Shown one piece after another: positions 11,487 to 63,752 of a stretch of DNA of 64,000 nt; position 1 is the first letter of the stretch; each line of letters opens with the position of its first letter. A program made the position numbers and the translations under genes. The DNA lies in contig NIVC01001023.1 of assembly GCA_002269645.1 (NCBI GenBank), positions 248,001-312,000 on the forward strand, read 5' to 3'. A model generated the notes under the pieces. The model did not search any database. It was not told the origin of the DNA and saw nothing but the letters and a program-made list of their open reading frames with translations. This DNA is from Macrostomum lignano (taxonomy: Eukaryota).

Positions 11487-11773
11487 GTATGTGACGTTAA
11501 AGTAACCAAATTGTAGTGAGTTGCAAGTGTACTTGTATGCGCCAGTCGCTAGAGCGGGGTTGGGGGGTTGCTATTGTACAGCATTTACGTGCTTTTCACC
11601 CACCCCTGTCTCCATCTTTTATACCCAGTTATGTAACAATCGTTGCATCGTATTTAACCTGCGTATCGATCTAATAAACGCCAAGAGACTTCGTTAACTC
11701 TCAGTTGTATCTCTCTGCCTTAGTCTAAAAAATTGAAGCATATTATTATTTTTAGTTTCCACTGCAGTTGCAG

Positions 11774-22400: not shown

Positions 22401-24577
22401 CTGTCTCTCTCCTTGCCCCTCACCCTACATCACAGCCTGTCTCTCTCCCTGCCCCTCACCCTGCATCCCAGCCTGTCTCTCACCCTGTCCCTCACCCTAC
22501 ATCACAGCCTGTCTCTCTCCCTGCCCCTCACCCTGCATCACAGCCTGTCTCTCTCCCTGCCCCTCACCCTACATCACAGCCTGTCTCTCTCCCTGCCCCT
22601 CGCCCTACATCACAGCCTGTCTCTCTCCCTGCCCCTCACCCTACATCACAGCCTGTCTCCCTCCCTGCCCCTCGCCCTGCATCCCAGCCTGTCTCTCTCC
22701 CTGCCCCTCACCCTACATCACAGCCTGTCTCTCTCCCTGCCCCTCACCCTACATCCCAGCCTGTCTCTCTCCCTGCCCCTCACCCTACATCACAGCCTGT
22801 CTCTCTCCCTGCCCCTCGCCCTGCATCCCAGCCTGTCTCTCACCCTGTCCCTCACCCTACATCACAGCCTGTCTCTCTCCCTGCCCCTCACCCTGCATCC
22901 CAGCCTGTCTCTCTCCCTGCCCCTCACCCTACATCCCAGCCTGTCTCTCTCCCTGCCCCTCACCCTACATCACAGCCTGTCTCTCTCCCTGCCCCTCACC
23001 CTACATCACAGCCTGTCTCTCTCCCTGCCCCTCACCCTGCATCCCAGCCTGTCTCTCTCCCTGCCCCTCACCCTACATCCCAGCCTGTCTCTCTCCCTGC
23101 CCCTCACCCTACATCACAGCCTGTCTCTCTCCCTGCCCCTCACCCTACATCACAGCCTGTCTCTCTCCCTGCCCCTCACCCTGCATCCCAGCCTGTCTCT
23201 CTCCCTGCCCCTCACCCTACATCACAGCCTGTCTCTCTCCCTGCCCCTCACCCTGCATCACAGCCTGTCTCTCTCCCTGCCCCTCACCCTACATCCCAGC
23301 CTGTCTCTCTCCCTGCCCCTCGCCCTACATCCCAGCCTGTCTCTCTCCCTGCCCCTCACCCTACATCCCAGCCTGTCTCTCTCCCTGCCCCTCGCCCTAC
23401 ATCCCAGCCTGTCTCTCTCCCTGCCCCTCACCCTACATCACAGCCTGTCTCTCTCCCTGCCCCTCGCCCTACATCCCAGCCTGTCTCTCTCCCTGCCCCT
23501 CGCCCTACATCACAGCCTGTCTCTCACCCTGCCCCTCACCCTACATCCCAGCCTGTCTCTCTCCCTGCCCCTCACCCTACATCACAGCCTGTCTCTCTCC
23601 CTGCCCCTCGCCCTACATCCCAGCCTGTCTCTCTCCCTTCCCCTCACCCTACATCACAGCCTGTCTCTCCCTTCTCCTCACCCTACATCACAGCCTGTCT
23701 CTCTCCCTGCCCCTCACCCTACATCACAGCCTGTCTCTCCCTTCTCCTCACCCTACATCGCAGCCTGTCTCTCTCCCTGCCCCTCACCCTACATCACAGC
23801 CTGTCTCTCTCCCTGCCCCTCACCCTACATCACAGCCTGTCTCTCTCCCTGCCCCTCACCCTGCATCCCAGCCTGTCTCTCTCCCTGCCCCTCACCCTGC
23901 ATCCCAGCCTGTCTCTCTCCCTGCCCCTCACCCTACATCACAGCCTGTCTCTCTCCCTGCCCCTCACCCTGCATCACAGCCTGTCTCTCTCCCTGCCCCT
24001 CACCCTACATCACAGCCTGTCTCTCTCCCTGCCCCTCGCCCTACATCACAGCCTGTCTCTCTCCCTGCCCCTCGCCCTACATCCCAGCCTGTCTCTCTCC
24101 CTGCCCCACCCTACATCCCAGCCTGTCTCTCTCCCTGCCCCTCGCCCTACATCCCAGCCTGTCTCTCTCCCTGCCCCTCGCCCTACATCCCAGCATGTCT
24201 CTCTCCCTGCCCCTCACCCTGCATCACAGCCTGTCTCTCTCCCTGCCCCTCACCCTACATCACAGCCTGTCTCTTTCCCTGCCCCTCGCCCTACATCCCA
24301 GCCTGTCTCTCTCCCTGTCCCTCGCCCTACATCCCAGCCTGTCTCTCTCCCTGCCCCACCCTACATCCCAGCCTGTCTCTCTCCCTGCCCCTCACCCTAC
24401 ATCACAGCCTGTCTCTCTCCCTGCCCCTCACCCTACATCACAGCCTGTCTCTCTCCCTGCCCCTCGCCCTACATCCCAGCCTGTCTCTCTCCCTGCCCCT
24501 CGCCCTACATCACAGCCTGTCTCTCACCCTGTCCCTCACCCTACATCACAGCCTGTCTCTCTCCCTGCCCCTCACCC
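19490..24577. repeat. 5.1-kb satellite, 36-bp monomer CCCAGCCTGTCTCTCTCCCTGCCCCTCACCCTACAT, with a 678-bp higher-order repeat in the 5' half
   Basis: A diagnostic 33-bp variant monomer recurs at 20306, 20699, 20984, 21377, 21662 and 22055 (alternating spacing 393/285). Confidence 0.97.
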
Positions 24578-44827: not shown

Positions 44828-47800
44828 ATGGACGCCATCAAGAAGAAAATGCTGGCTATGAAGCTGGATAAGGAGAATGCAATGGACAGGTAATAATGCT
44901 TTTGGAATGCAATGAAGCAATTAGTCACGTATATGTACGACCTATCAATTAAGTTCTTGATCTTGTTCTTGGTCTTAATCTCGTAATTTAAGCCTTTAAT
45001 ATTATATTATTCAGATAAAATAAAAAATTGTAAATGGAAAGTCAAAATTACACGTAACGTTTAGTGTTCAATAATTATCTAATTTAATTTCTAATGCAAA
45101 GTCCACATTTTTACATTCCAGAGCCGATCAGGTAGAAACGAAGCTTAAAGAAAAGGAAGATGAGATGACAAAGAAGGAAGAAGAAATGGGTGAACTGCAG
45201 AAAAAGTTTTCACAGCTGCAGCAGGAACTTGATACGGCACAGGAGTCTCTGGCAGGTGCTAACACAAACCTGGAGGCCACTGAAAAGAGGGCTAATGATG
45301 TGAGTGTTTTGCTTGCTACACAATTTTGTTAAAGCAATTTTTTCCTAGAATTTTTTATTGCAATTAATTAGTTCACAGAGCTTAAGTATCTTCACAATTT
45401 TTTAAAACTCGTTGTCAAGGATTTGTTAAAATGATAACACTCGCGCAGATTTAACTTGCCACGTGACTTAATTTTCGCTTATTTTTATTCTTCACTTCCG
45501 TAGTTTGACTTCTTTACTACGCTACACAACATTTTGTATCAGTATTTCTGACGCGATCAGTATGGCCAATTCCGGACAATCTCAAAGTGTTTTGTCGATA
45601 CTAAAGCAGAAAATGCAGACGCTGCGTAAGGAATTAGACGCGGTTACAGAAGAGCTGGAAAATAAAGACAATGAGCTCGCAGAAGAGGAGAACAAAAAAG
45701 CAGAAGTAGGTGGCTACCTGTTGAATAAGTCAATTTCTTTATTTTTTTATAATTAACTAAATTTCTTTCTTCAGTTTTTATATTAGTTACAAAAAATTCT
45801 TCATTATTTTTTTACTGAACTGTTTGATAACATTTCAAAAAAATTAATTTCTTACTAGAATTCTGAAGCCTGAATAAAGAATGGAAGTTCGAAGGAAAAT
45901 GTATAAATTAATTTAATTTGTAAAATTCCATTGAAATTCATTGATATTTTCTAGAGGTATATCTGATATCAGCATTTTATACCAGGCCCATATTCCATTT
46001 TTCTTTTAAAAGTGGCTTTACTGCTTCGATCAGTAGAGATTCAAAAATTAGAATGATTTGTATGATAAATGCATTTTGCAATTATTTTCTAAATCTGTCA
46101 TCAAAAAATCAATCAAAATCAATAAAAAATCAATTTAATTTTTTGCAAATCACAGCATTGTTTCAATAGGTTTATTATAAATCATTATTGAACATTATAA
46201 ACGCAACTATATTTATTTATAAAGCAATAAAATGATCAACTATACTTAATTTTTAAGATTTGTTTATTTGTTTGTTTGCTTGTCTGTAACACTCTTGTTA
46301 TACTACTATTTTAACGCGAAACATTATTACTAATATCATTATTATTATTACTATTATTATTAATATTTTTAAAATTTTATTAAAACGAAGTCAAAATTAG
46401 ATAAGTGAATTTCAGTCTATAATAGATAAAAGTTTTATGAAATTTTCACCATTCACAGGCCGAGGCCGAGGTGCAGGCTCTGACTCGCCGCATCCGGTTG
46501 ATCGAGGAGGATCTCGAGCAGACTGAGACCCGACTCACCGAGGCCACCCAGAAACTTGAGGAGGCCAGCAAGGCTGCGGACGAGAGTGAGCGGTAAGAAG
46601 ACTCAAAGTTTTCCTATTATTAAATAAAACAAATGACTTTGTTTATTATTGCGTTTCTACGTTTAAAAGCTTCACGTGATTTTCTTTTTTTCAATTTTTA
46701 TAATTCATATTTACTTTACTTTCCTTTGCTTGTATTTTTGCCGTTTTGAGTGCTCAGTACTCAATCACATAGATGAAAATCTAAAACTCTACTCGCTTTT
46801 GGAATCCAACTAAACGCGGCGATCCTGCAGCGCCCTGAAGGTGCTGGACAGCCGCCAGACCGCCGAGGACAGCCAATTGGAGAGTCTGGAACGACAGACT
46901 GATGAAGCCACTGAGCTGGCTGCTGAGAACGAGCAGCGACAAGCAGAGGTGACGCCCCGCCCTCCTTCTGCAATTTGCTCCCGCCGCTCTTTGCAGCCGG
47001 CACAGTTTGATTTCCTTCAGCTCAATTCAATGCATTTTAATCGATCGCTTTAACCATACAATAAAAAATAGTTTGCGCGCTAACTTCCATTGATCCTAAT
47101 GGTGACGGCTGGTCAATGACAGTCTGTATTTCAGGGGTCGGCAAACTTATTTTACCTGAATTGCCTGATAGAGAATCCTGCTCATGACTGCGGGCCAGAT
47201 GACAGCTAGAATAAATCATGGGGAATAGAGGAGAGAAAGAGGAGATGAGAAAATAGATGGGATGAGAGATGGAAGGAGAGATGAGAGGATAAGAGGGAGG
47301 GAGAGAGAGGAGAGATGAAGGAATAGGGGAAGACAGGAGAGGAGGGGGAGAGGGGAGAAGAGTGGAGAAGGGGGAGATGAGAGGAGAAAGGACAGAAGGG
47401 GGGAGAAGAGGGGAGAGGAGAGAAGAGTGGAGAAGGGGGAGGAGAGAGATGAGAGGAGATCACAGGAGAGAGGAAAGAAGGAGAAGAAGAGAGGGGAAGA
47501 GGAGAGAGGAGGGGAGCTGAGAGAAGGGGAAGAGAGGAGAGAAGAGGAGAGAGGAGGAGAGCTGAGAGAAGGAGAGAAGAGACAAGAGGGGGGAGAGGAG
47601 AGAGAAGAGAACCGTGAAGACCTTGAGCGGGGCCGGATTGCTATTGTGAAGTTTCAAAGGACCCGAGAGTATCGAATAGAGGGGGTTGTTGGGCCGGAGC
47701 TCGCCGAAACCCCGATCTGTATTGTGTTTTTTGCACTAAAAAGCTGCTTGAATATTTTAGTACTGTATGTACTTGTATGGCGTGCCAGTAGCCTATACGG

Positions 47801-50800
47801 CTACCTACTGTAAGTAGCTCTAACCGCTTTTTTTACGACGCAGAAATTACAGAAGAAAACATTTTTTTGTTCAGAAAATGCATTTTCATCGCATTCAAAT
47901 CGTAATTATTAAAGTCTTATTGGAAATTAAAGTTCCAATTCGAAACCAGCAGTTTTGCGATAAAAATGCAACGCGATTTTGCGATTTATAACAAAATCTT
48001 AAGTTAAACGTAATGACATGCTATTTATAAATAATCTATTATAACAAATAAGTGCTATAAAATTAGACAAAGGTTTACCTCTCTAACCCATAACGGTTTG
48101 CCTGCTTTAAAATTGGCTGCGATAGATGAAAAACTCATTGCACCTGAGCTCAGCGTCACGACACCGCGCAGTTTTAGCTCAGGTTGCACTCGACCAATTT
48201 TAAAAACAAAATCCACCGCAGAGGTCGCAAGGTGCTTGAGAACCGCTCCATCGCTGATGATGAGCGAATCAACACGCTGGAGGAGCAGCTCAAAGAGGCC
48301 AAGTACATCGCCGAGGACGCCGACCGGAAGTACGATGAGGCGGCCAGGAAGCTGGCCATCACCGAGGGCGACCTTGAGCGGGCCGAGTCGCGTCTTGAGA
48401 GCGCCGAGAGGTGATGAGGCTGCGTTTGAAGGAAGCTGACTTAAGAGCACAGATACTTGAAACACTGGATGGGCCGCTCGCTTTAGTTAGTGACAACTGC
48501 TAACGTACTTGTAAAGTCAGGTATAATATGGCATGATTTTGATTAGTTTCAACAAGTTATTGTCTATGGCTAGAACCGAAAAAACACAATTAGAACGCAC
48601 TTAGGGGCGTAGCCAAGGGGGCAGGGGGTTCCTCTAGTTGGTGCTGGCGCCCCTTGGTGCTGGCGCCCCTTGGTGCTGGCGCCCCTTGGTGCTGGCGCCC
48701 CTTGGTGCTGGCGCCCCTTGGTGCTGGCGCCCCTTGGTGCTGGCGCCCCTTGGTGCTGGCGCCCCTTGGTGCTGGCGCCCCTTGGTGCTGGCGCCCCTTG
48801 GTGCTGGCGCCCCTTGGTGCTGGCGCCCCTTGGTGCTGGCGCCCCTTGGTGCAAGCAATATTTGCAAAGACATCAGGCTGAAGCAAACAAACTTCATTGC
48901 CTACATCTAGATAGCGAGAGGCCCATCCAATGTTCGGAATGAGTTCAATCTGTGACCGAGAGTCCTTCCTAGTGGCAGAATCTGAAGCGTTTACCCTGCC
49001 CAACGCATGCCCTCATCTTTGGCAACAAACTTTTTTTTTGCGAATAACTTAATCATATCTAACACGCTTGTTTACCACACAGTTTGTAAATTTTTAAACA
49101 CTGATTCAGTGTTGCATGCTTGATTTTCTGCTTGACTGTGATGTACTAACCTTGCATCGTGTCCACCTGGAGCAGGTGTACAAGCGCTACTCAGAGGTGG
49201 ACAAAGAGGTGGACGAGGCCGAGGAACGCGCCTCTGTGGCCACCGCCAAGGCGCGTCAGCTCCGCGATGAGTTGACCATCGTGAACATCAATCTGAGGTC
49301 GTTGCAGTACAGCGAGGAGAAGGTCTGAAATTCTCATGCTCACCAGCTATTGGTGTAGGGGGGGGGTGGCAGAGGTTCAAAGCGTTGACGGACAACAAAA
49401 GTACACGCAGAAGGTATCTCTGCTTTTCAGCAAGGGAAACATGCGACAATGGCATGCTGCAATAATGTTTATAACCTGTTGCTTTTTGAGTAAGAATTTT
49501 ATGAGCATATACAATTCAAACATGCTGATGGTTGCGTTGACATGTCAGTTTGTTACTCGAGTTGATACTATTGCTTATTGATTATTGTTCGCGCCTAAAT
49601 GCCAAAAAATTGTTTTTAATGTTTGTATCCTGGTGTAATCCTCGTTTTCGCCGCTCAAATGCAACTTGGAATTCTATTAACGCACTTACTGTATCTTTTA
49701 ATCTGAAACCGCCACTCTGATCCTAAATTCTGATCATTAAACCCTAATCCAGATCCCCAGACCCACTCTGATCCCAATCCAGATCCTCAAACCCACTCTG
49801 ATCCCAATCCAGATCCCCAAACCCACTCTGATCCCAATCCAGATCCCCAAACCCACTCTGATCCCAATCCAGATCCCCAAACCCACTCTGATCCCAATCC
49901 AGATCCCCAAACCCACTCTGATCCCAATCCCGATCCCCAAACCAACTCTGATCCCAATCCCGATCCCCAAACCCACTCTGATCCCAATCCAGATCCCCAA
50001 ACCCACTCTGATCCCAATCTAGATCCTCAAACCCACTCCAGATCCTCAAACCCACTCCAGATCCTCAAACCCAATCCAGATCCCCAAACCCACTCTGATC
50101 CCAATCCAGATCCTCAAACAAACTCTGATCCCAATCCAGATCCTCAAACAACTCTGATCCCAATCTAGATTCCCAAACCCACTCTGATCCCAATCCCGAT
50201 CCCCAAACCCACTTTGATCCCAATCCAGATCCCCAAACCCACTCTGATCCCAATCCCGATCCCCAAACCCACTCTGATCCCAATCCAGATCCCCAAACCC
50301 ACTCTGATCCCAATCCAGATCCCCAAACCCACTCTGATCCCAATCCAGATCCTCAAATCCACTCTGATCCCAATCCAGATCCCCAAACCCACTCTGATCC
50401 CAATCCAGATCCTCAAACCCACTCTGATCCCAATCCCGATCCCCAAACCAACTCTGATCCCAATCCCGATCCCCAAACCCACTCAGATCCCAATCTAGAT
50501 CCTTAAACCCACTCTGATCCCAATCCAGATCCCCAAACCCACTCTGATCCCAATCTAGATCCCCAAACCCACTCTGATCCCCATCCCGATCCCCAAACCC
50601 ACTCTGATCCCAAGCCGCTAATCCAACCAAATCCTGCAGCAAAATCCTTGAGCTCGAAGAGGAGCTCCGAGTGGTCGGCAGCAACATGAAGTCCTTGGAG
50701 ATCTCTGAGCAGGAAGCCGCCCAGCGTGAGGAGTCCTACGAGGAGACCATCCGGGACTTGTCCGAAAGACTCAAGACCGTGAGACCCGCCTGCATGAGTC

Positions 50801-53800
50801 GCGAGAAAGACATTCAGAAAACTTGTTTTATTCAAAAAATATTGATTTCAGTTGCCAGGCCAGGCGTTTCCCCCCGATTCATTTCTACAGCATGCCATGG
50901 TTGCTTGTTTTTTTTGCGCGTGTTTTAGAATCAGTCTTTGTTTTGAGCTGCATGAAATGCACCATGAAACCATAAACACAGCATCCTCTTTGCATGCCCA
51001 ACTGAAACTAAATGCAGGCCTCAAGCAAGGAGACTCACCTGGAGAAGCACATTCAGGAGCTGAAGTTCAAAGTAGACGAGGTAGCTGCTTGTACTCTTTT
51101 TTTCTTCAAATTTTCTTATCCCAGACTCTCGCATGCAGCTCGGTTGAACAGGCGTTTCCATCATTGCTGATTACTGCTTGGCAACTTATTTTTATGCCTA
51201 GACTTAACTTAACTACGTACATTTACTAACCGTCTCCTTTATTCTCCACATCTTCCATTCTCATCAAATTTATTCACCTGATCCCAATTCTCTCCGCCCC
51301 TACCTGTAAATTACCTTCGATCCTGATTCTCCCCTGTAAATTACTCTGTTTCTTATTATCTAAAATCAGAGAAATTCCTTTGATCCCAATTCTTTCTTTT
51401 GAATTCCCCTGATTCCAATTCTTCCACTGTAAATTCCCCTGTTTCCAATTCTTCCCTTTGAACTCCCCTGATCCCAATTCTTCCACTGTAAATTCCCCTG
51501 ATCCCAATTGCTCCCCTGTAAATTCCCCTGATCCCAATTGTTCCCCTGTAAATTCCCCTGATCCAATTGCTCCCCTGTAAATTCCCCTGATCCCAATTGC
51601 TCCCCTGTAAATTCCCCTGATCCCAATTCTTCACCTGTAAATTCCCCTGATCCCAACTGCTCCCCTGTAAATTCCCCTGATTCCAATTCTTCACCTGTAA
51701 ATTCCCCTGATCCCAATTGCTCCCCTGTAAATTCCCCTGATCCCAATTGTTCCCCTGTAAATTCCCCTGATCCAATTGCTCCCCTGTAAATTCCCCTGAT
51801 CCCAATTGCTCCCCTGTAAATTCCCCTGATCCCAATTGTTCCCCTGTAAATTCCCCTGATCCCAACTGCTCCCCTGTAAATTTCCCAGATCCCAATTCTT
51901 CACCTGTAAATTCCCCTGATCCCAATTCTTCACCTGTAAATTCCCCTGATCCCAACTGCTCCCCTGTAAATTCCCCTGATTCCAATTCTTCACCTGTAAA
52001 TTCCCCTGATCCCAATTGCTCCCCTGTAAATTCCCCTGATCCCAATTGCTCCCCTGTAAATTCCCCTATAATTTCCCCCTGTAAATTACTCTAAACCTAA
52101 TATCCAGACTTCTATTCCCTTTCACTTCTCCATCCAGTCAGTATCTTTTCCTCTCCTTTTTTCATGGATCTTCCACCATCGAATCCTGTATTATTTTTTG
52201 ACTAACCATGATTTTTGCAATAACTCCTATAAAAACGGAATGCCTCTAAAACACCTTGGATTGATCTGGCCTGGCGATGAATAACAAGAAACAAAGGTTA
52301 GACTTTAAAATACTCGAACATTAGCTAGCAGTTGGTGTTTAACAATCTCACAAAAAACGCACGAAACACCTCAGGCTGAGCAGCGAGCCACAGAGGCCGA
52401 AAGGCAGGTTGCCAAGCTGCAGAGCGAGGTGGACCGACTGGAGGGTACGACTGAGCACTGTGCTCAACTGCTGCTGTGCCTGCCCAGTCCCAGATTATTA
52501 TTTTGCTTGCTTGCTAAACTGCCATAAAGTTTACAATACTTCTCAGCTGCATGCGAGGGTTTTTGGGTGTTTTGTACTTTCTTTTGGTGCGTGCAATCAA
52601 GTGAACTGGATTCCAGCTACCCCAGACGATTCCAGCTACACCTGACGATTCCAGCTACTACCTGACAATTCCAGCTACCACCTGACAATTCCAGCTACCA
52701 CCTGACAATTCCAGCTACCACCTGACAATTCCAGCTACCACCTGACAATTCCAGCTACCACCTGACAATTCCAGCTACCACCTGACAATTCCAGCTACCA
52801 CCTGACAATTCCAGCTACCACCTGACAATTCCAGCTACCACCTGACAATTCCAGCTACCACCTGACAATTCCAGCTACCACCTGACAATTCCAGCTACCA
52901 CCTGACAATTCCAGCTACCACCTGACAATTCCAGCTACCACCTGACAATTCCAGCTACCACCTGACAATTCCAGCTACCACCTGACAATTCCAGCTACCA
53001 CCTGACAATTCCAGCTACCACCTGACAATTCCAGCTACCACCTGACAATTCCAGCTACCACCTGACAATTCCAGCTACCACCTGACAATTCCAGCTACCA
53101 CCTGACAATTCCAGCTACCACCTGACAATTCCAGCTACCACCTGACAATTCCAGCTACCACCTGACAATTCCAGCTACCACCTGAAAATTCCAGCTACCT
53201 CATGCTCACTATTTTTTTGTTGAGTACTGTTTGTTGTCACTGTGCATGGTTTGTTTTATCCCGCATCTCAATAACCTGCATGCAAACTGACAACCCCAGG
53301 CAGAGCAGAGGGCACTCACCGCAGAACGAGAGGCCCTGCAAATGCAGAAGGAGCTTGATGAGGCCGAAGGTAAAGAAACTGAGAAATGTCGGAGGAAATT
53401 AGAAGTTGTGGATAGGACCCTGTTGGATTCGGGATTCACTGTAGGTCGGCGCCCCTGTCTCTTAGGTTGGCGCCCCTGTCTCTTAGGTTGGCGCCCCTGT
53501 CTATTTGATTGGTTGGCGTCCCTGTCCCTTAGGTTGGCGCCCCTGTCCCTTAGGTTGGCGCCCCTGTCTCTTAGGTTGGCGCCCCTGTCTCTTAGGTTGG
53601 CGCCCCTGTCTCTTTGATTGGTTGGCGCCCCTGTCCCTTAGGTTGGCGCCCCTGTCCCTTAGGTTGGCGCCCCTGTCCCTTAGGTTGGCGCCCCTGTCCC
53701 TTAGTTTGGCGCCCGTCTCTTAGGTTGGCGCCCCTGTCCCTTAGGTTGGCGCCCGTCTCTTAGGTTGGCGCCCCTGTCCCTTAGGTTGGCGCCCCTGTCC

Positions 53801-55394
53801 CTTAGGTTGGCGCCCCTGTCCCTTAGGTTGGCGCCCTTGTCTCTTGGGTTGATGAAAATAAAATTTGAAGTTTTCGAAGCCAGCCTCAACCTCAACCCTG
53901 CATCAATCCGGTGAACTCATCTCTACAGTTGAGCTGCTGCAGAAGAAGGACAGCCTCCTGCAGCTGAAGGGCCAGCTGGAGAGCTACTACAAAGAGATTG
54001 AGAGCATTTAGGCGGCGTTACAGCACAGGTAGATGCAGGTGGTTCACCTCAAACACGGCTTGGCTAACTCAAAAATATCATAATTATTATGGAAAGTTAT
54101 GATACATTATTATTTGGTTTTAATTAGTTTACTCTCAAATTGTTAATTCAATCTGCATTTAACCTGCCGCTAGTCTTTAACTTTGTTTGCTTTATTGCAC
54201 TGATTGCTACCGGTAATTTTATTAAGTGTGAATAATTTTTATTTATACAATATTGCTACGTGCAAAATATTAACCTGATTTTGTTTAGTTATTCTATCTT
54301 AGTAAGAGCGTAATCTTAGCATTGACACTTTAAATACCAATTTCACTGTGTTCCTCGTACTGTAGATATCTCGGAGTCCCACACCCTCGAATCCCACTGC
54401 TGTAAATTCCACACCCTCAAATCCCACATCCTCAATTCCCACTGATTCAAATCCCACACCCTCAAATCCCACTGCTTCAAATCCCACTGCTTCAAATCCC
54501 ACACCCTCAAATCCCACTGCTTCAAATCCCACTGCTTCAAATCCCACACCCTCAAATCCCACCGCTTCAAACCATACACCCTCAAATCCTACTGCTTCAA
54601 ATCCCACACCCTCAAATCCCACTGCTTCAAATCCCACACCCTCAAATCCCACTGCTACAAATCCCACACCCATGCAAAAATCCCACACCCTCAAATCCCA
54701 CTGCTTCAAATCCCACTGCTTCAAATCCAACTGCTACAAATCCCACACCCTCAAATCCCACTGCTTCAAATCCCACTGCTTCAAATCCCACTGCTTCAAA
54801 TCCCACACCCTCAAATCCCACTGCTTCAAATCCCACTGCTTCTAATCCCACTGCTTCAAATCCCCACACCCTCAAATCCCACTGCTTCAAATCCCACACC
54901 CTCAAATCCCACTGCTACAAATCCCACACCCATGCAAAAATCCCACTGCTTCAAATCCCACTGCTTCAAATCCCACTGCTTCAAATCCCACTGCTTCAAA
55001 TCCCACACCCTCAAATCCCACTGCTTCAAACCCCACACCCTCAAATCCCACTGCTTCAAATCCCACACCCTCAAATCCCACTGCTTCAAATCCCACACTC
55101 TCAAATCCCACTGCTACAAATCCCACACCCATGCAAAAATCCCACACCCTGAAATCTCAACTCCTAGAAATCCCATCCCACACTATCAAAACCAACTCCC
55201 AGAAATTCCACATTCTAAAATCCCACACCCTCAAAGTCCCACACGCTAAGTTGGCACTCCCCAAAGTCCCAACAGGTGAAACCTCAACCAACCGCATTCC
55301 CCATCCCGCAGACGAGCTCCTGTCCGAGAAGGAACGCTACAAGGGCATCAGCGAAGAACTGGACCAGACCTTTGCCGAGCTCACCGGCTACTGA
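44828..55394 (+). CDS. TPM: Tropomyosin, canonical muscle-type 284-aa isoform (exon set B)
   Basis: Exons 44828-44889, 45122-45299, 46459-46592, 48222-48410, 50640-50778, 52375-52444 and 55312-55394 total 855 nt. Starts MDAIKKKM and ends [12 protein letters not shown]. Confidence 0.97.
45562..45705 (+). CDS. TPM: Tropomyosin alternative first exon (short 252-aa isoforms)
   Basis: [26 protein letters not shown]...KKAE (48 codons). Phase-0 donor GTAGGT joins the exon at 46459. Confidence 0.88.
46831..46948 (+). CDS. TPM: Tropomyosin divergent exon 4A (aa 125-164)
   Basis: 118 bp, phase 2 to 0, [48 protein letters not shown]; 13/39 identical to the canonical segment. Confidence 0.85.
47220..47615. 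repeat. AG-rich low-complexity intronic tract
   Basis: Purine run. Confidence 0.85.
48639..48851. repeat. Intronic minisatellite, 16-bp unit GGTGCTGGCGCCCCTT
   Basis: Near-perfect tandem copies. Confidence 0.95.
49176..49322 (+). CDS. TPM: Tropomyosin divergent fused exon 5/6A (aa 165-213)
   Basis: 147 bp, phase 0 to 0. [49 protein letters not shown]. Confidence 0.85.
49740..50612. repeat. Intronic minisatellite, 30-bp unit CCCAATCCAGATCCCCAAACCCACTCTGAT
   Basis: Directly visible; ends about 28 bp before the acceptor at 50640. Confidence 0.96.
51018..51080 (+). CDS. TPM: Tropomyosin divergent exon 7A (aa 214-234)
   Basis: 63 bp, phase 0 to 0, [32 protein letters not shown]. Confidence 0.8.
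51370..52085. repeat. Intronic minisatellite, 29/30-bp unit GTAAATTCCCCTGATCCCAATTGCTCCCCT
   Basis: Directly visible. Confidence 0.95.
52613..53200. repeat. Intronic near-perfect minisatellite, 20-bp unit ATTCCAGCTACCACCTGACA
   Basis: Long run of identical units with no spacers. Confidence 0.97.
53300..53369 (+). CDS. TPM: Tropomyosin divergent exon 8A (aa 235-258)
   Basis: 70 bp, phase 0 to 1. [23 protein letters not shown]; 12/23 identical to exon 8B. Confidence 0.88.
53446..53845. repeat. Intronic minisatellite, 21-bp unit GGCGCCCCTGT(C/T)(C/T)CTTAGGTT
   Basis: Its reverse complement nearly equals the unit of 3110-3890. Confidence 0.95.
53929..54011 (+). CDS. TPM: Tropomyosin divergent terminal exon 9A (aa 258-284)
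   Basis: 83 bp, phase 1. (V)[26 protein letters not shown]; same length as exon 9B. Confidence 0.85.
54375..55240. repeat. Intronic minisatellite mixing two 15-bp units (CAAATCCCACTGCTT / CAAATCCCACACCCT)
   Basis: Directly visible; degenerates toward the acceptor at 55312. Confidence 0.93.
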
Positions 55395-56674
55395 ACTCGC
55401 AAATCATTTTTTCTGTTTTCTCATTTCACCGCAACAGCTCTCTCTCAGACTTGCTGGCAGACATTTGTTTCGCATATATTTATTTATTTCAGCAAACAGT
55501 CTGTGAAATATTTAATATGATTTTATTCATTCACCTAGCTGCTCTCTTTCGTATCTGCTTTGCTTATTGTCAATCAGTTTAGAATTTATCATTAATCGAT
55601 TTGCAGTGTTCACCCCACAACAGTTAGAAATTGAAGCCACCCTAAACATGTAGTAGCTACAGACTCAAAAACAGACAAATACAGACAACAATATACTCAG
55701 ACTTGAAAGACTCTTTCTGCATAAGCAGAATTTAATTTCTTTTGTTTCAGTTTAAACAAATTGTCACAATCCGACTCCGCAATACGCATTTATTTATTAA
55801 TGTTTATACTAGAAGGCCGAGCTTAAAAAAGATCAATTTTCAGTGAGCTGAGTTAAATTAATACGCAGAGGTCGTCACGATTCACGCCGAAAAGGGGGGC
55901 GGCTTCAGTCGAACAGGGGTTGACAGAGTTGATAACCAATCTGAAGTAGGCATAACAATAATACTAAACCTTGCGATAAAAATACAATGTCCTCAATACG
56001 CTACTGATATTAGCTGGGGGGACAAAAGTAGCATAGTTGGGAAATGGTCAGCTGAGGACGCAGAATACTCCAAAGCGAGTGGAAGTTTAAAAACTAATAA
56101 AACAGATATAAACAACAAAGCATTTTTGAAAAAAAAACTCAAAATCTGTTTTCAGTGATAAAACCTCCTGACAAAGAAAAGCATTGAAACAGTTGGGGAA
56201 ATATTTATTAGCAAAATATATATAGGGAACAAAAACTGCTGAAAAAAACAACTCTGTTTTTTAGCACACGGCTGAAGGCGGGCGGTTGAAAAGCAAGGAG
56301 AGACAAAAATTAAAACAAAATTAGAATAATTTTATGCACTACTGCCAGCCAAATGAGGAGCGCAAGTAGTGAGTTGCGACTTAAAATTGAAGCTAGAACA
56401 AAGACCTGTTCAATACGGAATAACCTAAGATCTGGGTAATGAAATTTAGAAAAAAACAACAATATTTGACAAAAATTTTTATGGTTAAATGACAGTCCAG
56501 GTTTGAATCTTTAAACATCTGTAATGAGCATTCTAAATGTGTCATGACATTAAAATGTAATGGATATAATTGTTGGCATAATAATGCTATTAAAATATGA
56601 CAAGCAAACAGACAAACGTATTGTACTTTGTAAAAAGGACTAAAAAATATTTTGTATCATTTTAAATTTAGGGC

Positions 56675-57810
56675 AATTCTTAGAAATATTCAGGGACGAT
56701 TCCTAGAAACATTCAGGGCTAATTCTTAGAAATATTCAGGGACGATTCCTAGAAACATTCAGGGCTAATTCTTAGAAATATTCAGGGACGATTCCTAGAA
56801 ACATTCAGGGACCATTCCTAGAAATATTCAGGGACAATTCGTAGAAATATTCAGGGACAATTCCTATAAATATTCAGGGCTAATTCTTAGAAATATTCAG
56901 GGACGATTCCTAGAAACATTCAGGGCTAATTCTTAGAAATATTCAGGGACGATTCCTAGAAACATTCAGGGACCATTCCTAGAAATATTCAGGGACAATT
57001 CGTAGAAATATTCAGGGACAATTCCTAGAAATATTCAGGGACAATTCGTAGAAATATTCAGGGACAATTCCTAGAAATATTCAGGGACAATTCCTAGAAA
57101 TATTCTGGGATAATTCCTAGAAACATTCAGGGTCAATTCCTAGAAACATTCAGGGTCAATTCCTAGAAACATTCAGGGACAATTTCTAGAAACATTCAGG
57201 GCCAATTCCTAGAAACATTCAGGGCCAATTCCTAGAAACATTCAGGGACAATTCCTAGAAACATTCAGGGTCAATTCCTAGAAACATTCAGGGCCAATTC
57301 CTAGAAATATTCAGGGTCAATTCCTAGAAACATTCAGGGTCAATTTCTAGAAACATTCAGGGACAATTTCTAGAAACATTCAGGGACAATTTCTAGAAAT
57401 ATTCAGGGACAATTCCTAGAAACATTCAGGGTCAATTCCTAGAAATATTCTGGGACAATTCCTAGAAACATTCAGGGACAATTCCTAGAAACATTCAAGG
57501 TCAATTCCTAGAAATATTCTGGGACAATTCCTAGAAACATTCAGGGTCAATTCCTAGAAACATTCAGGGACAATTCCTAAAAACATTCAAGGTCAATTCC
57601 TAGAAATATTCTGGGACAATTCCTAGAAACATTCAGGGTCAATTCCTAGAAATATTCTGGGACAATTCCTAGAAACATTCAGGGTCAATTCCTAGAAACA
57701 TTCAGGGTCAATTCCTAGAAATATTCTGGGACAATTCCTAGAAATATTCAGGGATAATTCCTAGAAATATTCAGGGACAATTCCCAGAAATATTCAGGGA
57801 CAATTCCTAG
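56675..57810. repeat. Intergenic minisatellite, 23-bp unit CCTAGAAA(C/T)ATTCAGGGACAATT
   Basis: Period 23 (57121/57144). Confidence 0.96.
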
Positions 57811-57878
57811 ATAGCAGCTATCAGGGAAGACTGGGCGATTTCTCAATAAAAACTGTGATACAAAAACAAAAAAGCAAG

Positions 57879-60800
57879 TCAGTCCTGCCGGTGGTTCTCC
57901 GCCGCAGTCGCATCAAAGCCGCGCAACGCCTCGAGATCCTCTTTGTAGTTTAACCGAATTTTGTCGAACGGTTTCGGATCCAAATCTACTATGGCTAGGT
58001 TCATTAGGAGTCCTCGACCGGACACGGGGTCCTTGGCGTGGGCAACGCTGTCTGGCAGCTCGCTAGCTGGCAGGCGGCTGGGGGCAAGGGTGAGCATGAC
58101 TGAGCAGTCCTTGGCAACCAGGGATGTCAGGTAGGCCTCGTAGTGCTGCGCGGACTGGATCACCGACAGCGGCGCCTGCAGCGACTCCACGAAGTCCTTC
58201 AGGCTGCCCTTGGAGCAGTCCCTGCGGGGGTGTGACCGATTCTCATGGATCACTCATGACCGATTCTCATGGATCACTCATGATCGATTCTCATGAATCA
58301 CTCATGACCGATTCTCATGGATCACTCATGATAGATTCTCATGGATCACTCATGATCGATTCTCATGAATCACTCATGATCGATTCTCATGAATCACTCA
58401 TGACCGATTCTCATGAATCACTCATGACCGATTCTCATGAATCTCTCATGACCGATTCTCATGAATCACTCATGACCGATTCTCATGAATCACTCATGAC
58501 CGATTCTCATGAATCACTCATGACCGATTCTCATGAATCACTCAGTGCAGATTCTCATGAATCACTCAGTGCAGATTCTCATGAATCACTCAGTGCAGAT
58601 TCTCATGAATCACTCAGTGCAGATTCTCATAAATCACTCAGTGCAGATTCTCATGAATCACTCAGTGCAGATTCTCATGAATCACTCAGTGCAGATTCTC
58701 ATGAATCACTCAGTGCAGATTCTCATGAATCACTCAGTGCAGATTCTCATGAATCACTCAGTGCAGATTCTCATGAATCACTCAGTGCAGATTCTCATGA
58801 ATCACTCAGTGCAGATTCTCATGAATCACTCAGTGCAGATTCTCATGAATCACTCAGTGCAGATTCTCATGAATCACTCAGTGCAGATTCTCATGAATCA
58901 CTCAGTGCAGATTCTCATGAATCACTCAGTGCAGATTCTCATGAATCACTCAGTGCAGATTCTCATGAATCACTCAGTGCAGATTCTCATGAATCACTCA
59001 GTGCAGATTCTCATAAATCACTCAGTGCAGATTCTCATGAACCACTCAGTGCAGATTCTCATGAATCACTCAGTGCAGATTCTCATAAATCACAAGAGCA
59101 GCTCACCAAGCGGTATCATTGTCCTGCAGGAACTTGACCAGTCGGTTATAATGCGACAGGGTGCCATCAATACCCAGCCGATCAAGCAGCTGAACAGACA
59201 GAATTCGGCCCAGCACACAGTTGATGCTGAGCTGGGTGGGTTGCTGCTGCTGTTGCTGTTGTTGCTGTTGTTCCTCTTGCATCCGCCTTGAGCACAGCTG
59301 CGAGTAGTGCGAATCAGCTGGATAGGAAAATTCCGCAGAAGCTGACACAGGGGCCTCATCAGAGACGGGTAGCGACTTGAACTCATAGGTGAGTGCCTGG
59401 TAGAGGGTCTCCACAAATCCCGCAATCAGCTGCTCGTCTGTCACCTCGGCGTTGGTTGACGAGGAAGATGACGGAGGAATGTCGAAGAACTCGCGGAGAC
59501 AGGCTGCGAGATCGGCTGGAGACTCGTTGCCGACTATGTAGGCTGGGGTGCCATTCTGGGGTGAGTGGAATGGGGTGTGTGCTTTTGAGAAGTTGGCATG
59601 CGTCGATCGACTGAACATCCGACGTCGACGTTGGATATTTCTAGGAAAAAACTTTATTTCTAGGAAAGAGTTTATTGGGATCGGGTGTTTTTGACGAAGA
59701 GTGAATTGGGGTTCATTGTTGTTAGGAATGTGTACTTTGTGACTGTGTTTCTAGGAAAGTTCAAATTGTGGTGGGGTTTTCTAGGAAACAGTGTACATTG
59801 TGATTGAGTTTTCTAGGAAAGAGTGCATATTGGGTTGATTGCTTTTAGAAAAGTGTGCATTGAGGTTGGGTGTTTCTAGGAAAGAGAGTACATTGAGGTT
59901 GGCTGTTTCTAGGAAAGAGTGTACATGGAGATTGAGTGTTTCTAGGAAAGAGTGTACATAGAGATTGGGTGTTTCTAGGAAAGAGTGTACATTGAGGTTG
60001 GGTGTTTCTAGGAAAGAGTGTACATAGAGATTGAGTGTTTCTAGGAAAGAGTGTACATTGAGATTGGCTGTTTCTAGAAAGAGTGTACATTGAGATTGAG
60101 TGTTTCTAGGAAAGAGTGTACATTGAGGTTGGGTGTTTCTAGGAAAGAGTGTACATTGAGATTGGGTGTTTCTAGGAAAGAGTGTACATAGAGATTGGGT
60201 GTTTCTAGGAAAGAGTTTCATTGTGATTAAATATTTCTAGGAAAGAGGGCAGATTAGAGCTAAATGTCTCTAGAAAACGCTGAACATTAGGACTGAGCAA
60301 TTTTTGAGTGGCCTGTGGGTTTCCAAGAAATACAGCACACCTTCGATGGCTGTTCCCAACAAACAGTAAAACTGATAGAGAAGTCACAAATCCTGCCTAC
60401 CTTGAACACTCGCAAATTATTTTGCGGAGTCTGGATCAGCGACATCAGAGCGGATACCATGCGACTTTTAACGCTGAAAAAAACAATAACACAAACGTGC
60501 TTAATATTACGATGCCTGAAATAAAATGAGATCAAGAATTTCAGATGGCAAATTAAGAAAACTCACCCTGAGAACAGGTCGCATGGACAGTATTGACTTC
60601 GGGTCTCGTATTGGCGACCCTTTTTCTAGAGTAAAGGAGAATTCAAAGAAACCAAAGTTAAAAACACTCGTTTAGACCCGATATTAATCACAGTGGCGGT
60701 TACAAAACAAGACCCTCAACTAACCAGATGAAACTGCATCAAACAGAAGCGACACCAGGTTCTGCGGACTTTCTCCTGCACCAAAGTTGACACGGGTATG

Positions 60801-63752
60801 AAGCCTTGCTTTACCTGTGAAAGCAATTTCGACATTATTTACAAATCTTTCAGAAGCAATTCGTGTATTGAGCTACGAGCGAGCGGAAACTGACCAGGGA
60901 CTTCCTTGAAGTTGTCTGGATTGGAAACGAGATATATATATAATGCCATAAAATCTAGACTTCCACATCCAGTAGAGCTCTTAGAAGGCCTTGACTTTTC
61001 CCAAAATTAATCCAGTCCAGGAAGAGCTCTAGGAGTCCATGACATTTTCAAAATTAGCGTTCAGTCTACGAGAACTCTAGAATTAAAGTCAAAGTCCTCG
61101 GCTTTTCGCAGGCTACAGTCCAGTCAAAAGAAAGCTTAAGGAATCCATGACTTTTCCTAAACTAGCGTCCAGTCCAGGGACAGCTTTAGGAGTCCTTGGC
61201 TTTTCCTAAACTAGCGTTCAATCCAGGGAGAGCTCTAGGAGTCCTTGGCTTTTCCTAAACTAGCGTCCAGTCCAGGGAGAGCTCTAGGAGTCCTTGGCTT
61301 TTCCTAAACTAGCGTCCACTCAAGGAAAGCTCAAACAGCCAATGTTCGAAGTGTGATCGAAAGAGAAATCTACTTCTATAAAAATGTCATATTTTCAGTT
61401 TAATGATTTAACGTAAAAAGTTTATTTAATAAAAAACAGATATTTCAACTTATTTCATATTCCATTTATTAGTAATTCCAGATTTTATTATTAAAAATTA
61501 TAATCCTAAGTATAAGTTTCTAAAAATAAATTGCCTTGAATTTTATGCCCCCCCCCCACATTGTGCGAGAGGTGGACAGCTGCACTGACTGACTCATCGT
61601 GAGACAAGGCAAGGCTGAGGTGGTGGGGTCACAGGAACAATAAAGAGAGGAGAGAGAGATGGGCTAAGGAAACCTCGAGACTCAAACGAGCACATTGGCA
61701 CAATAATAGTAGGTAGGCCAATTTTTAGAAAGCTATAAATAAACTGACTGGACAAAAGCATTGCACACACACAGACCAGCAGAGCAAGAATGATGCAGCT
61801 ACAGAAGCTTCTCAATCTGGCGCTATTGCTAGCAGTTTTGCTAGCAGGCAGAGCACACAGCTCAGATGATGCAGGACAGCCAGCACCGGAGTCAGACTCT
61901 CCAGACTCCGAGGATTTCACTCCGGAGCAGCTAGCCAAGGCCCGGTCCAATTTGGACAAACTTTTCGACGAGAAACTGGACGCAAATCGAGACGGGAAGG
62001 TGAGCCGTCAGGAGCTGATTGCATGGCTGGCAGAAGCCAACAGACAGCAGGCTGCTAGAGAGCTGGATGAGACCTGGCAAGCCTACAACCTGACCACTGA
62101 TGGAGCAGACAGCTTCCTGGACTGGGACAGTCACGCTGCTCGCCGAGCTGCAAGCGTGGACACTGGAACCGCTTCCGGCTCGGAAGAGGAAAAGGCAAAA
62201 GCCAAGCAACAGCAGCAGGCGGAGTTCCAAGCCGAGGTGAAACGAGCTATTGATGAGGCTAGCAAGGAGACTGGGATTGACAAAGCCGGCATCAATGTTG
62301 GCGTGCCGCAGATGCCACCTCCTGAGACACCGGAGCCGACAAAGTCAACAAGAACGGAAGCTGACGGCGGCGGCAGCGAGGCGGAGCATCAGCATCGGCT
62401 GGCGGTGGAACTCGGCCGCGATCGCCGACGCTGGGAAGCCGCCGACGAGGACGGCGACGGCCGGTTGAATCGGCGCGAATTTGCGGCGTTCGCCCTGGCC
62501 GAAGGGGCCGCCGAGGGCGCTGCCGCAGCCTCGCCCGCAATGCGCCGGGTGCTGGCGCTGGAGGCCATGGAGCGGCTGGACTCGGACGGCGATGGCCGAG
62601 TGTCTCTGGCCGAGTTCCTGGCCGGAGCACCGGCCGCAACCGATCCCAAAGCGCCGGACGAGGACGCCAAGAATTTCAAGGACGTCTGGGATGTGAACAA
62701 GGACGGCTATATGGACGCGGAGGAGATGGAGAAGATGCTGGATTATGTGGACTCGGCTGGACCGGCTCACAGCAAGGAGGCTGAGGCTGAAGCTGAGGCG
62801 GCTGAGCTGGCTGATGAAGCTGACAGGCTGATGAAGACGGTCGATTCAAACCTGGACGGCGGTCTGAGCAAAGACGAGGTGCTGGCGAGACTGACGGACT
62901 TCGCCGGCTCCGCTGCTACGGACTACGGCAGCTCGATTGGCATCCATGATGAGCTGTGACGCCTCACAGCTGACTGAGTAGGACTCAATATGCTGAGTAG
63001 GACTGAAGATGCTGAGTAGGACTGAAGATGCTGAGTAGGACTAAAGATGCTGAGTAGGACTGAATATGCTGAGTAGTACTGAAGATGCTGAGTAGGACTG
63101 AAGATGCTGAGTAGGACTGAATATGCTGAGTAGTACTGAAGATGCTGAGTAGGACTGAAGATGCTGAGTAGGACTAAAGATGCTGAGTAGGACTGAAGAT
63201 GCCGAGTAGGACTCAATAGCTGACTAGGACTGAAGATGCTGAGTAGTACTGAAGATGCTGAGTAGGACTGAAGATGCTGAGTAGGACTCAATATGCTGAG
63301 TAGAACTCAAGATGCTGAGTAGTACTGAAGATGCTGAGTAGGACTCAAGATGCTGAGTAGAACTCAAGATGCTGAGTAGGACTTAAGATGCTGAGTGGGA
63401 CTCTTGATGTCAACAAGTGCTCGAATAAATACAATAAATAAGTCATTAACAATTTTCGATGAGTCTAATGTAACAGTTCCTATTTTCGTATTTTATTTTT
63501 TCACTTCTTTTGTCCCCTAAAGGAAACTGGAAAAGTACAAATTCACTAACTCACCTTGAGTTCTATGCACAGAGACGGCCGACCTTCGAGCACGAACTTG
63601 TCAAGTTCGATAGGCAGGAAAGCCACATCCGATGTGATGATGGCCTCGTGATAATGCACATCGATGTCCTTTACCAGCCGGTTTTGGGGACGGAAGGGGC
63701 GCATCAGGGTGTTGATCTGGGTCAAGTACTCAGTGTCCGCGTGCAGCACTTC
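57879..63752 (-). CDS. IPPK: Inositol-pentakisphosphate 2-kinase; 5' exons lie outside the window
   Basis: Exons 63752-63555, 60814-60725, 60625-60567, 60473-60401, 59555-59107 and 58221-57879, with consistent phases (0,0,2,0,2). Motifs RPSLCIELK-VKQGF, CRFCLMQ, YCPCDLFSG, QNNLRVFKNG, AKDCSVML and VDLDPKP. Confidence 0.92.
58235..59092. repeat. Intronic 24-bp minisatellite in two homogeneous domains
   Basis: ATTCTCATG(A/G)ATCACTCATGACCG up to about 58540, then ATTCTCATGAATCACTCAGTGCAG. Confidence 0.96.
59640..60250. repeat. Intronic minisatellite, about 33-bp unit TTTCTAGGAAAGAGTGTACATTGAGGTTGGGTG
   Basis: Directly visible, degenerate at both ends. Confidence 0.92.
60960..61325. repeat. Degenerate 49-bp tandem repeat
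   Basis: TTTTCCTAAACTAGCG at 61201 and 61250; more diverged copies lie upstream. Confidence 0.8.
61790..62959 (+). CDS. CREC-family (calumenin/reticulocalbin-like) secretory-pathway EF-hand protein; intronless, nested antisense in an IPPK intron
   Basis: 389-aa ORF with a signal peptide, EF loops DANRDGKVSRQE, DEDGDGRLNRRE, DSDGDGRVSLAE, DVNKDGYMDAEE and DSNLDGGLSKDE, and C-terminal HDEL. TATA-like TATAAATA at 61734 and AATAAA at 63424. Confidence 0.92.
   Translation: MMQLQKLLNLALLLAVLLAGRAHSSDDAGQPAPESDSPDSEDFTPEQLAKARSNLDKLFDEKLDANRDGKVSRQELIAWLAEANRQQAARELDETWQAYNLTTDGADSFLDWDSHAARRAASVDTGTASGSEEEKAKAKQQQQAEFQAEVKRAIDEASKETGIDKAGINVGVPQMPPPETPEPTKSTRTEADGGGSEAEHQHRLAVELGRDRRRWEAADEDGDGRLNRREFAAFALAEGAAEGAAAASPAMRRVLALEAMERLDSDGDGRVSLAEFLAGAPAATDPKAPDEDAKNFKDVWDVNKDGYMDAEEMEKMLDYVDSAGPAHSKEAEAEAEAAELADEADRLMKTVDSNLDGGLSKDEVLARLTDFAGSAATDYGSSIGIHDEL
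62975..63400. repeat. 19-bp minisatellite GATGCTGAGTAGGACTGAA in the predicted 3' UTR of the CREC gene
   Basis: Period 19 (63001/63020). Confidence 0.95.

Follow-up and report, generated by a model that had tools for sequence, protein, structure and literature searches.

A tropomyosin gene of the flatworm Macrostomum lignano with fused, staggered alternative exons and two full-length frames through its middle region

Introduction

Tropomyosin genes of bilaterian animals reportedly contain sets of tandemly duplicated, mutually exclusive exons ('MATEs', or internal paralogs), and internal paralogs are also said to occur in the tropomyosin genes of neodermatan flatworms. Here we analyze a tropomyosin gene of Macrostomum lignano, a representative of Macrostomorpha within Rhabditophora. 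The gene lies on the + strand of a 64,000-nucleotide stretch of contig NIVC01001023.1 (positions 248,001 to 312,000; this whole 64-kb stretch is called the window below, and coordinates refer to it unless another sequence is named). Like the bilaterian MATEs, it carries tandem duplicates of equal length and equal phase, one conserved and one divergent. In the bilaterian genes the copies associate along the gene into long (exon 1a) and short (exon 1b) isoforms; there the pairs are reportedly separate cassettes and their association is a matter of regulation, whereas in Macrostomum neighbouring cassettes are welded together and the two series run out of register. The neodermatan genes are closer still, with the same order of copies, six exon pairs and an exon 1b placed between exons 2 and 3. 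They differ in having twelve separate exons and a mixed use of exon 5, while in Macrostomum five exons replace eight for codons 126-234.

In Schistosoma mansoni, the TpmII gene was described to contain six mutually exclusive tandem exon pairs (exons F/G to P/Q), from which at least a dozen isoforms are produced (Silas 2014, PMC4026961). Duplication of tropomyosin exons is recurrent, and the copies are assigned to two promoter isoforms (PMC3342872). For the Macrostomum locus, an earlier reading of the window (the original prediction) had proposed that staggered exon boundaries, arisen by reciprocal intron loss, hard-wire the coupling of mutually exclusive splicing choices. We followed this proposal by analysis of reading frames, of orthologous loci, of sequence motifs and of database sequences.

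Results

Gene structure

A complete tropomyosin gene was found at positions 44828-55394 by comparing the translated window with human TPM1, and exon coordinates were set by splice signals and reading frame. All exons are on the + strand, and AG and GT flank every internal exon. Downstream of the constitutive exon 3 (46459-46592, 134 nt), which covers codons 81-125 and ends in phase 2 of codon 125, the middle part of the protein is encoded in two copies. The divergent copy (series A) consists of exon 4A (46831-46948, 118 nt; codons 126-164, ending in phase 0 after codon 164), the fused exon 5/6A (49176-49322, 147 nt = 71 + 76; codons 165-213), which is uninterrupted at codon 188, and exon 7A (51018-51080, 63 nt; codons 214-234). 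The conserved copy (series B) is made up of two fused exons, 4/5B (48222-48410, 189 nt = 118 + 71; codons 126-188), uninterrupted at codon 164 and ending in phase 2 of codon 188, and 6/7B (50640-50778, 139 nt = 76 + 63; codons 188-234), uninterrupted at codon 213. The boundaries described in the original prediction were all confirmed: set B breaks within codon 188 (phase 2) and is intact at 164 and 213, and set A breaks after 164 and 213 (phase 0) and is intact at 188.

The canonical exon lengths of vertebrate TPM genes are 118/71/76/63 nt, and the lengths of the three fused exons are exact sums of canonical tropomyosin exon lengths. All canonical intron positions (125, 164, 188, 213, 234, and 258) are present when both series are combined, each series missing a complementary subset. 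The tandem copies of exons 8 and 9 agree strictly in length and phase; among exons 4-7, adjacent copies that agree in both appear only once the fused exons are split at the ancestral junctions.

Further downstream, exon 8B (52375-52444, 70 nt; codons 235-257 plus 1 nt) is the conserved copy and is contained in P0001, a transcript-derived Macrostomum sequence. Exon 8A (53300-53369, 70 nt) is the divergent copy, joined in P0001 to exon 9A (junction 53369|53929). Exon 9A (53929-54011, 83 nt including the stop) encodes an alternative C-terminus (...YYKEIESI) and exon 9B (55312-55394, 83 nt including the stop) the canonical one (...TFAELTGY), identical in a UniProt entry of this species (A0A1I8FBT4, P0051). 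At the other end of the gene, exon 1a (44828-44889, 62 nt; donor gtaata) carries the start codon of the long (284-aa, muscle-type) isoform and is split at codon 21, the same as in Echinococcus granulosus, and exon 2 (45122-45299, 178 nt) covers codons 21-80. Exon 1b (45562-45705, 144 nt) has an ATG of its own (MANSGQSQS...KKAE, 48 aa) and serves as an alternative first coding exon; joined to exon 3 it gives a short isoform of 252 aa, the short form of tropomyosin being typically a coiled coil of about 248 aa. An equivalent of exon 1b lies just upstream of exon 3 in Schistosoma margrebowiei and is found also within a Fasciola retrocopy described below. In Macrostomum, exon 1b may be paired with the A path.

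The scores of the A copies were set against a chance control: the two strands of the window were searched for every candidate of the form AG-open reading frame (ORF)-GT with a canonical length (n = 1,405), and the candidates were scored with references independent of the window, namely human TPM1 and the B path of E. granulosus. Besides one sub-window within exon 3, only tropomyosin exons scored 1.0 per residue or higher, with values of 1.43-2.57 for the A exons; the top unrelated candidate reached 0.9, and no candidate on the minus strand of the window reached 0.8. The A-only segment from 4A to 9A (159 aa) gave a colinear match to the Pfam Tropomyosin family (PF00261) with 86.5 bits (cut-off 38.6); against the same profile the B long isoform scored 303 bits and the short A isoform 156.5 bits. 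Positions a and d of the coiled coil are hydrophobic in 77% (A) and 81% (B) of cases in register, and in at most 48% in any shifted register. On account of the scan scores, the Pfam match and the kept coiled-coil register, the A exons are, as judged from sequence, genuine coding exons and not noise.

Reading-frame analysis

The five middle exons (4A, 4/5B, 5/6A, 6/7B, and 7A) can be combined, in order, into 32 subsets, and the reading frame of each was determined. A protein of 284 aa resulted from two subsets only, 4A+5/6A+7A and 4/5B+6/7B. In 24 of the 32 there was no intact frame to the normal stop, with a premature stop in nearly all, and the remaining six (4A; 6/7B; 4A+5/6A; 4A+7A; 6/7B+7A; and 4/5B+6/7B+7A, the last of 305 aa) stay in frame at the wrong length. 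Since the ancestral lengths of 118, 71, and 76 nt are not multiples of three, a series, once entered, must be kept to codon 234 for a full-length product; exon 7A is 63 nt long, a multiple of three, and the frame therefore cannot bar 7A after 6/7B. For exons 8 and 9 all four combinations are in frame. Two proposals of the original prediction are borne out by this enumeration, namely that after the choice of 4A or 4/5B only the same set restores a full-length frame up to aa 234 and that exons 8 and 9 are still combinable. The term 'hard-wired' holds for the ORF but goes too far for the choice of splice sites, because mis-joined products are merely unproductive, or, in six cases, in frame with the wrong length. 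Within the fused exons, none of three GT donors survives at the old junctions, and one AG is left, at 4B|5B, where the sequence now reads gag|gc.

Orthologous loci in other flatworms

Four neodermatan loci were mapped with the same exon scan: Echinococcus granulosus (L001), Schistosoma margrebowiei (L002), Paragonimus skrjabini miyazakii (L124), and Fasciola hepatica (L126). In every one, separate exons of 118, 118, 71, 71, 76, 76, 63, 63, 70, and 70 nt were found in the order 4A 4B|5B 5A|6A 6B|7B 7A|8B 8A (A divergent, B conserved), both copies being interrupted by introns at 164, 188, and 213. In the three loci whose sequence extends over the two exons 9 (E. granulosus, S. margrebowiei, and Fasciola), 9A precedes 9B. 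Such an unfused arrangement matches the ancestral order that had been predicted (4A 4B|5B 5A|6A 6B|7B 7A|8B 8A|9A 9B), and in it 4B and 5B, 5A and 6A, and 6B and 7B are neighbours in all four loci. Comparison of exon order in other platyhelminths had been set beforehand as a check on reciprocal intron loss at 4B-5B, 5A-6A, and 6B-7B, and the four loci fit that prediction: the Macrostomum exons are exact sums of the unfused neodermatan exons, so that a precise loss of three introns explains the stagger. Block duplication followed by rearrangement, which the original prediction had named as a refuting outcome, was ruled out by the same unfused order in the four neodermatan loci. Orthology at exon level was dropped as a sequence-based test, as the A copies are star-like and fast-evolving, and positional evidence was used instead. 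All six orientation choices agree between Macrostomum and the neodermatans, for which the chance is about 1 in 64. Judging from their N-terminal sequences, the neodermatan loci appear to cover both flatworm tropomyosin paralogs; both share the exon order, and the arrangement is therefore old.

Loss of introns is preferred over gain because introns 164, 188, and 213, present in both neodermatan copies, are at canonical tropomyosin positions, and three precise losses in the Macrostomum lineage would be far more economical than at least six gains elsewhere. We infer both the direction of the change and its mechanism. One may suppose instead that fusion and stagger are the original condition, or that they go back to independent, staggered segment duplications in Macrostomum, so that neodermatan introns 164, 188, and 213 are gains or the shared order is convergent. 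It speaks for this that the orthology of one A copy to another is not demonstrable by sequence and that tropomyosin exon duplication recurs independently across lineages (PMC3342872). Yet gains would be needed at the exact canonical positions and phases, in both copies and in two paralogous genes, and the agreement of all six orientation choices would have to be accounted for, which makes this scenario highly improbable. An assembly artefact interleaving two gene copies or haplotypes was also considered, as the M. lignano genome is repeat-rich, minisatellites occur throughout the introns here, and P0051 and P0001 show that near-identical copies exist. Against it, the locus has a single exon 3 and one consistent strand and order, the same interleaved order is found in four other species, and the fused exons are continuous ORFs in unique sequence; we regard such an artefact as hardly credible.

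In the annelid Dimorphilus gyrociliatus (L123, 4417-5663), exons 3 and 4 are duplicated and a single fused exon 5+6+7 is present with no stagger; a second spiralian lineage has thus independently duplicated exons and lost introns. Long tropomyosin models of neodermatans (P0002, P0004-P0009) and of Dimorphilus (P0007) contain an insert of about 200 aa, not of coiled-coil type, ahead of exon 3. Its motifs LGPRLEPEG, LFSDYG, and YLNSGTLIK..IIG.EL.N are conserved from flatworms to the annelid, so that a conserved N-terminal region may exist as a third alternative; no tblastn match to this insert was obtained in the window.

Mixing of exon copies in relatives

In Fasciola, positions 9930-11697 of locus L125 (JXXN02000547.1) contain a processed, intronless retrocopy of a short tropomyosin mRNA with one in-frame TAG. 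Compared block by block with its parent gene (L126), it consists of exons 1b+3, 4A, 5B, 6A, 7A, 8A, and 9A and about 1 kb of 3'UTR. This fossil mRNA shows that divergent exons are spliced together in the short isoform, yet with the conserved exon 5 (4A-5B-6A): the Fasciola 1b mRNA has A copies for exons 4, 6, 7, 8, and 9 and the B copy for exon 5. In the annotation, the retrocopy is named 'Tropomyosin-2' and its in-frame stop is bypassed by an artificial intron. The converse combination, 4B-5A-6B, occurs in annotated models of S. margrebowiei (P0010) and S. mansoni (P0008); the annotated Schistosoma proteins P0006 and P0010 differ only in exon 5, and Schistosoma models join exon 1b to B exons.

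Because 4B and 5B form one exon in Macrostomum, and 5A and 6A another, neither 4A-5B-6A nor 4B-5A-6B can be full-length there. The original prediction had spoken of 'same-set' exons between which introns were lost. Two series do exist in Macrostomum now, but the Fasciola 4A-5B-6A mRNA indicates that the sets need not predate the fusions; the exon sets may be defined by the fusions themselves.

UGCAUG motifs

Occurrences of UGCAUG, the Fox-1/RBFOX-type motif, were counted within 150 nt of the alternative exons. Beside these exons, each of the five loci shows a 7-11 fold enrichment of the motif (P between 1e-4 and 2e-9), with observed vs. expected counts of 7 vs. 0.79 in the window, 9 vs. 1.14 in E. 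granulosus, 8 vs. 1.01 in S. margrebowiei, 6 vs. 0.73 in Paragonimus, and 12 vs. 1.06 in the parent locus of Fasciola; the reverse complement showed weak or no enrichment. The enrichment itself is robust. One of the sites in the window (49113-49118, + strand) is 63 nt upstream of 5/6A. Three are within the 239-nt intron between 6/7B and 7A (50791-50996, + strand), at 50791 (+13 from 6/7B), 50949 (-69 from 7A), and 50991 (-27 from 7A), that is, at the only junction where the frame cannot enforce exclusivity. Three more lie in the intron between 8B and 8A (52548-53282, + strand), at 52548 (+104 from 8B), 53243 (-57 from 8A), and 53277 (-23 from 8A). All seven sites are thus in the three introns that follow a B exon and precede an A exon. 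In each of the five loci a UGCAUG lies upstream of 8A, at a distance of 85 nt in Schistosoma and of about 50 nt in the other four.

These results suggest that a splicing factor is also involved, and its identity would be of the Fox-1/RBFOX type. The description of the coupling as architectural rather than factor-based was therefore too strong: the coupling by frame stands, while UGCAUG is enriched in all the loci. Since the frame discards wrong products but cannot pick splice sites, we consider the architecture a fail-safe laid over a factor-based choice and not a substitute for the factor.

Other modes of exclusivity were also considered. Steric hindrance, in which the intron separating two alternative exons is too short for splicing, is the mode of mutually exclusive splicing of vertebrate alpha-tropomyosin exons 2/3. 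Judged by intron length, it does not apply here, the introns between neighbouring alternative exons being 239-1317 nt. For competing RNA structures of the docking/selector kind, there is one candidate RNA bridge (49430-49467 with 50880-50917; 38 nt, 76% complementary), which would loop out 6/7B; the energy of the two-intron duplex was no better than that of shuffles (8 of 100 reach it). An Rfam scan of the whole window gave no match.

Transcript and database evidence

Entry A0A1I8FBT4 equals the B exons but for one residue and for gene-model errors; the model joins 4/5B to 6/7B, 8B, and 9B and contains intron-derived residues that are shared with the window. With a query specific to the A exons, P0001 alone was recovered from Macrostomum, and the B query recovered only the partial model P0051. 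A scan of metagenome contigs with a 17-mer from the 3' end of exon 3 gave 120 chance matches in bacterial-type contigs, none of them encoding tropomyosin, the pattern being too short.

P0001 is an ORF from a spliced Macrostomum transcript and the sole transcript-derived sequence recovered. Its segments map to 52357-52444, 53311-53369, 53929-about 54029, 58144-58227, 59073-59240, and 59431-59538. It crosses the 8A-9A junction, contains a retained intron, splices 8B to a cryptic acceptor (53309-53310) located 11 nt inside 8A, and splices the 9A 3'UTR over 9B to exons at 58144, 59073, and 59431. In the true frame it is unproductive, and its translation jumps frame twice, as in the output of error-tolerant gene callers. 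P0001 could be a read-through or polycistronic transcript, or could contain extra 3'UTR exons. P0051 and P0001 differ slightly from the window and imply near-identical gene copies with small differences.

It could be argued from this material that the A series (4A, 5/6A, and 7A) is a decaying relic and the B path alone is expressed in Macrostomum: no database protein contains 4A, 5/6A, and 7A, the sole M. lignano gene model follows the B path, and the A copies are very divergent. Several observations oppose such decay. The A frames are intact, of exact ancestral length and bounded by AG/GT throughout; the A-only segment matches the Pfam profile and its coiled-coil register is kept; 8A is spliced to 9A in P0001; and in Fasciola the corresponding A exons were joined in a real mRNA. 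We therefore judge the relic interpretation very unlikely. The use of 4A, 5/6A, and 7A, and the isoforms actually made in Macrostomum, are predicted here from the sequence alone.

Other features of the window

From exon 4A on, nearly all introns contain a minisatellite of their own, as does the region immediately following the gene (47379-47603, 48638-48852, 49746-50613, 51372-52067, 52610-53199, 53442-53851, 54390-55126, and 56666-57811). The units are of 15-30 nt in 13-50 copies, with one of 91 nt, and are mostly C-rich on the sense strand; one minisatellite stops 26 nt short of the 6/7B acceptor. The region 20001-24000, with a G+C of about 0.63 and a GC skew of about -0.7, is probably another C-rich repeat array. 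An intronless ORF of 389 aa (61790-62959, + strand) starts with an apparent signal sequence, contains several Pfam EF-hands, and ends in HDEL; its product looks like an endoplasmic reticulum-resident multi-EF-hand calcium-binding protein of the reticulocalbin/calumenin type.

Discussion

We consider it probable that Macrostomum inherited the paired design of flatworm tropomyosin genes and lost three introns precisely, giving staggered series with two full-length middle regions, between which the choice is still regulated. The inherited gene would have had a tandem pair for each of exons 4 to 9, composed of a conserved B and a fast-evolving A copy. The losses, at 4B|5B, 5A|6A, and 6B|7B, would each have occurred between adjacent exons able to splice together, likely by recombination with reverse-transcribed mRNA or by exact genomic deletion. 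As a result, five exons (4A, 4/5B, 5/6A, 6/7B, and 7A) would have remained, with boundaries out of step between the series, and the 16 possible combinations of four exon pairs would have been reduced to two full-length products. Crossing between series would almost always shift the frame and lead to an early stop, and out-of-frame products would presumably decay in Macrostomum. The path itself is probably chosen by regulated splicing, with a Fox-1/RBFOX-type factor acting at UGCAUG beside 5/6A, 6/7B, 7A, 8B, and 8A, and a further link to the alternative first exon 1b is possible. In that case the frame architecture would serve as a fail-safe, eliminating mixed products.

Several observations weigh against this interpretation. 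The six products of wrong length stay in frame, and the AG left at the former 4B|5B boundary is a cryptic acceptor that preserves length. No Macrostomum protein with 4A, 5/6A, or 7A was found by the A-specific query among 5.8 billion sequences, and P0001 is aberrant (8B plus truncated 8A), so cryptic sites are used at least occasionally. Between species, an A copy resembles other A copies no more than it resembles B copies, and its orthology is positional only. The placement of UGCAUG in introns of the 'B then A' kind was noted post hoc and is not exclusive in relatives.

The intron loss may, moreover, have been neutral and the coupling a by-product. On that account, no other introns in this part of the gene could go without the destruction of an alternative exon; these three were lost by drift from a gene in which coupling was already provided by splicing factors and promoter choice, and the stagger is without function. 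Three of the four introns between same-series exons were lost and 8A|9A was kept, which is what random loss among 'permitted' introns would give. The conserved UGCAUG enrichment argues for control by a factor across flatworms, and the fused exon of Dimorphilus arose with no stagger. On the other hand, relatives use combinations that are forbidden in Macrostomum (4A-5B-6A in Fasciola and 4B-5A-6B in Schistosoma), so that the fusions altered the coding repertoire as well as the number of introns, a change that may or may not have been selected. Neutral loss is a real possibility, albeit one that we lean against. A stronger form of the inherited-design reading would be that reciprocal intron loss worked as an evolutionary ratchet, which turned independent exon pairs into two interlocked 'genes within a gene' and eliminated mixed isoforms; this we find rather unlikely.

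What coordinates distant splicing choices in a single gene is an open question; long-read data show that coupling is common. It is usually ascribed to promoters, transcription kinetics, and shared factors. If only two classes of transcripts for codons 126-234 are made in vivo, the Macrostomum gene would be a case of long-range splicing coupling encoded purely in exon geometry. As the locus also shows, the loss of introns can do more than compact a gene: it can remodel an alternative-splicing repertoire. A natural comparison is offered by the same twelve ancestral exons, unfused in parasitic flatworms, where mixing is recorded, and welded in Macrostomum, where no full-length protein can come from mixing over codons 126-234. 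RNA interference and transgenesis are available for M. lignano as a laboratory model, so that the consequences of exon geometry for isoform output, as well as any cost of mixing tropomyosins, could be tested directly.

Our literature search returned no paper on Macrostomum tropomyosin splicing, nor on fused staggered mutually exclusive exons. The paired-exon design and frame-enforced exclusivity are already known; what is new is the welded, staggered form in Macrostomum and its effect on the isoform repertoire. Mutual exclusivity enforced by the reading frame, with decay of double-inclusion and double-skipping products, is a general mechanism known from reviews of such splicing and usually concerns one pair of exons. 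Macrostomum shares with it exon lengths that are not multiples of three and make wrong combinations unproductive, but here four ancestral pairs are linked over 109 codons by the stagger. Fox-1/RBFOX proteins regulate alternative exons in muscle and neuronal genes through UGCAUG; to our knowledge, flatworm tropomyosin has not been described as their target. As at such exons, the motifs found here are clustered within about 150 nt, strand-specific, and conserved in position. If only the two classes for codons 126-234 are made in vivo, the densest UGCAUG cluster would guard the sole junction (6/7B to 7A) that lies beyond policing by the frame.

Separation of internal paralogs is known from other flatworms as well. 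In planarians, the paralogs were reportedly subject to 'externalisation' by gene duplication. Both this duplication and the Fasciola retroposition resemble the Macrostomum case in that they leave less mixing between isoform series. The difference is that planarians and Fasciola placed the series in separate genes, whereas in Macrostomum both are kept in one gene and locked by intron loss, which, on the ratchet reading, would be a third route to the separation of internal paralogs.

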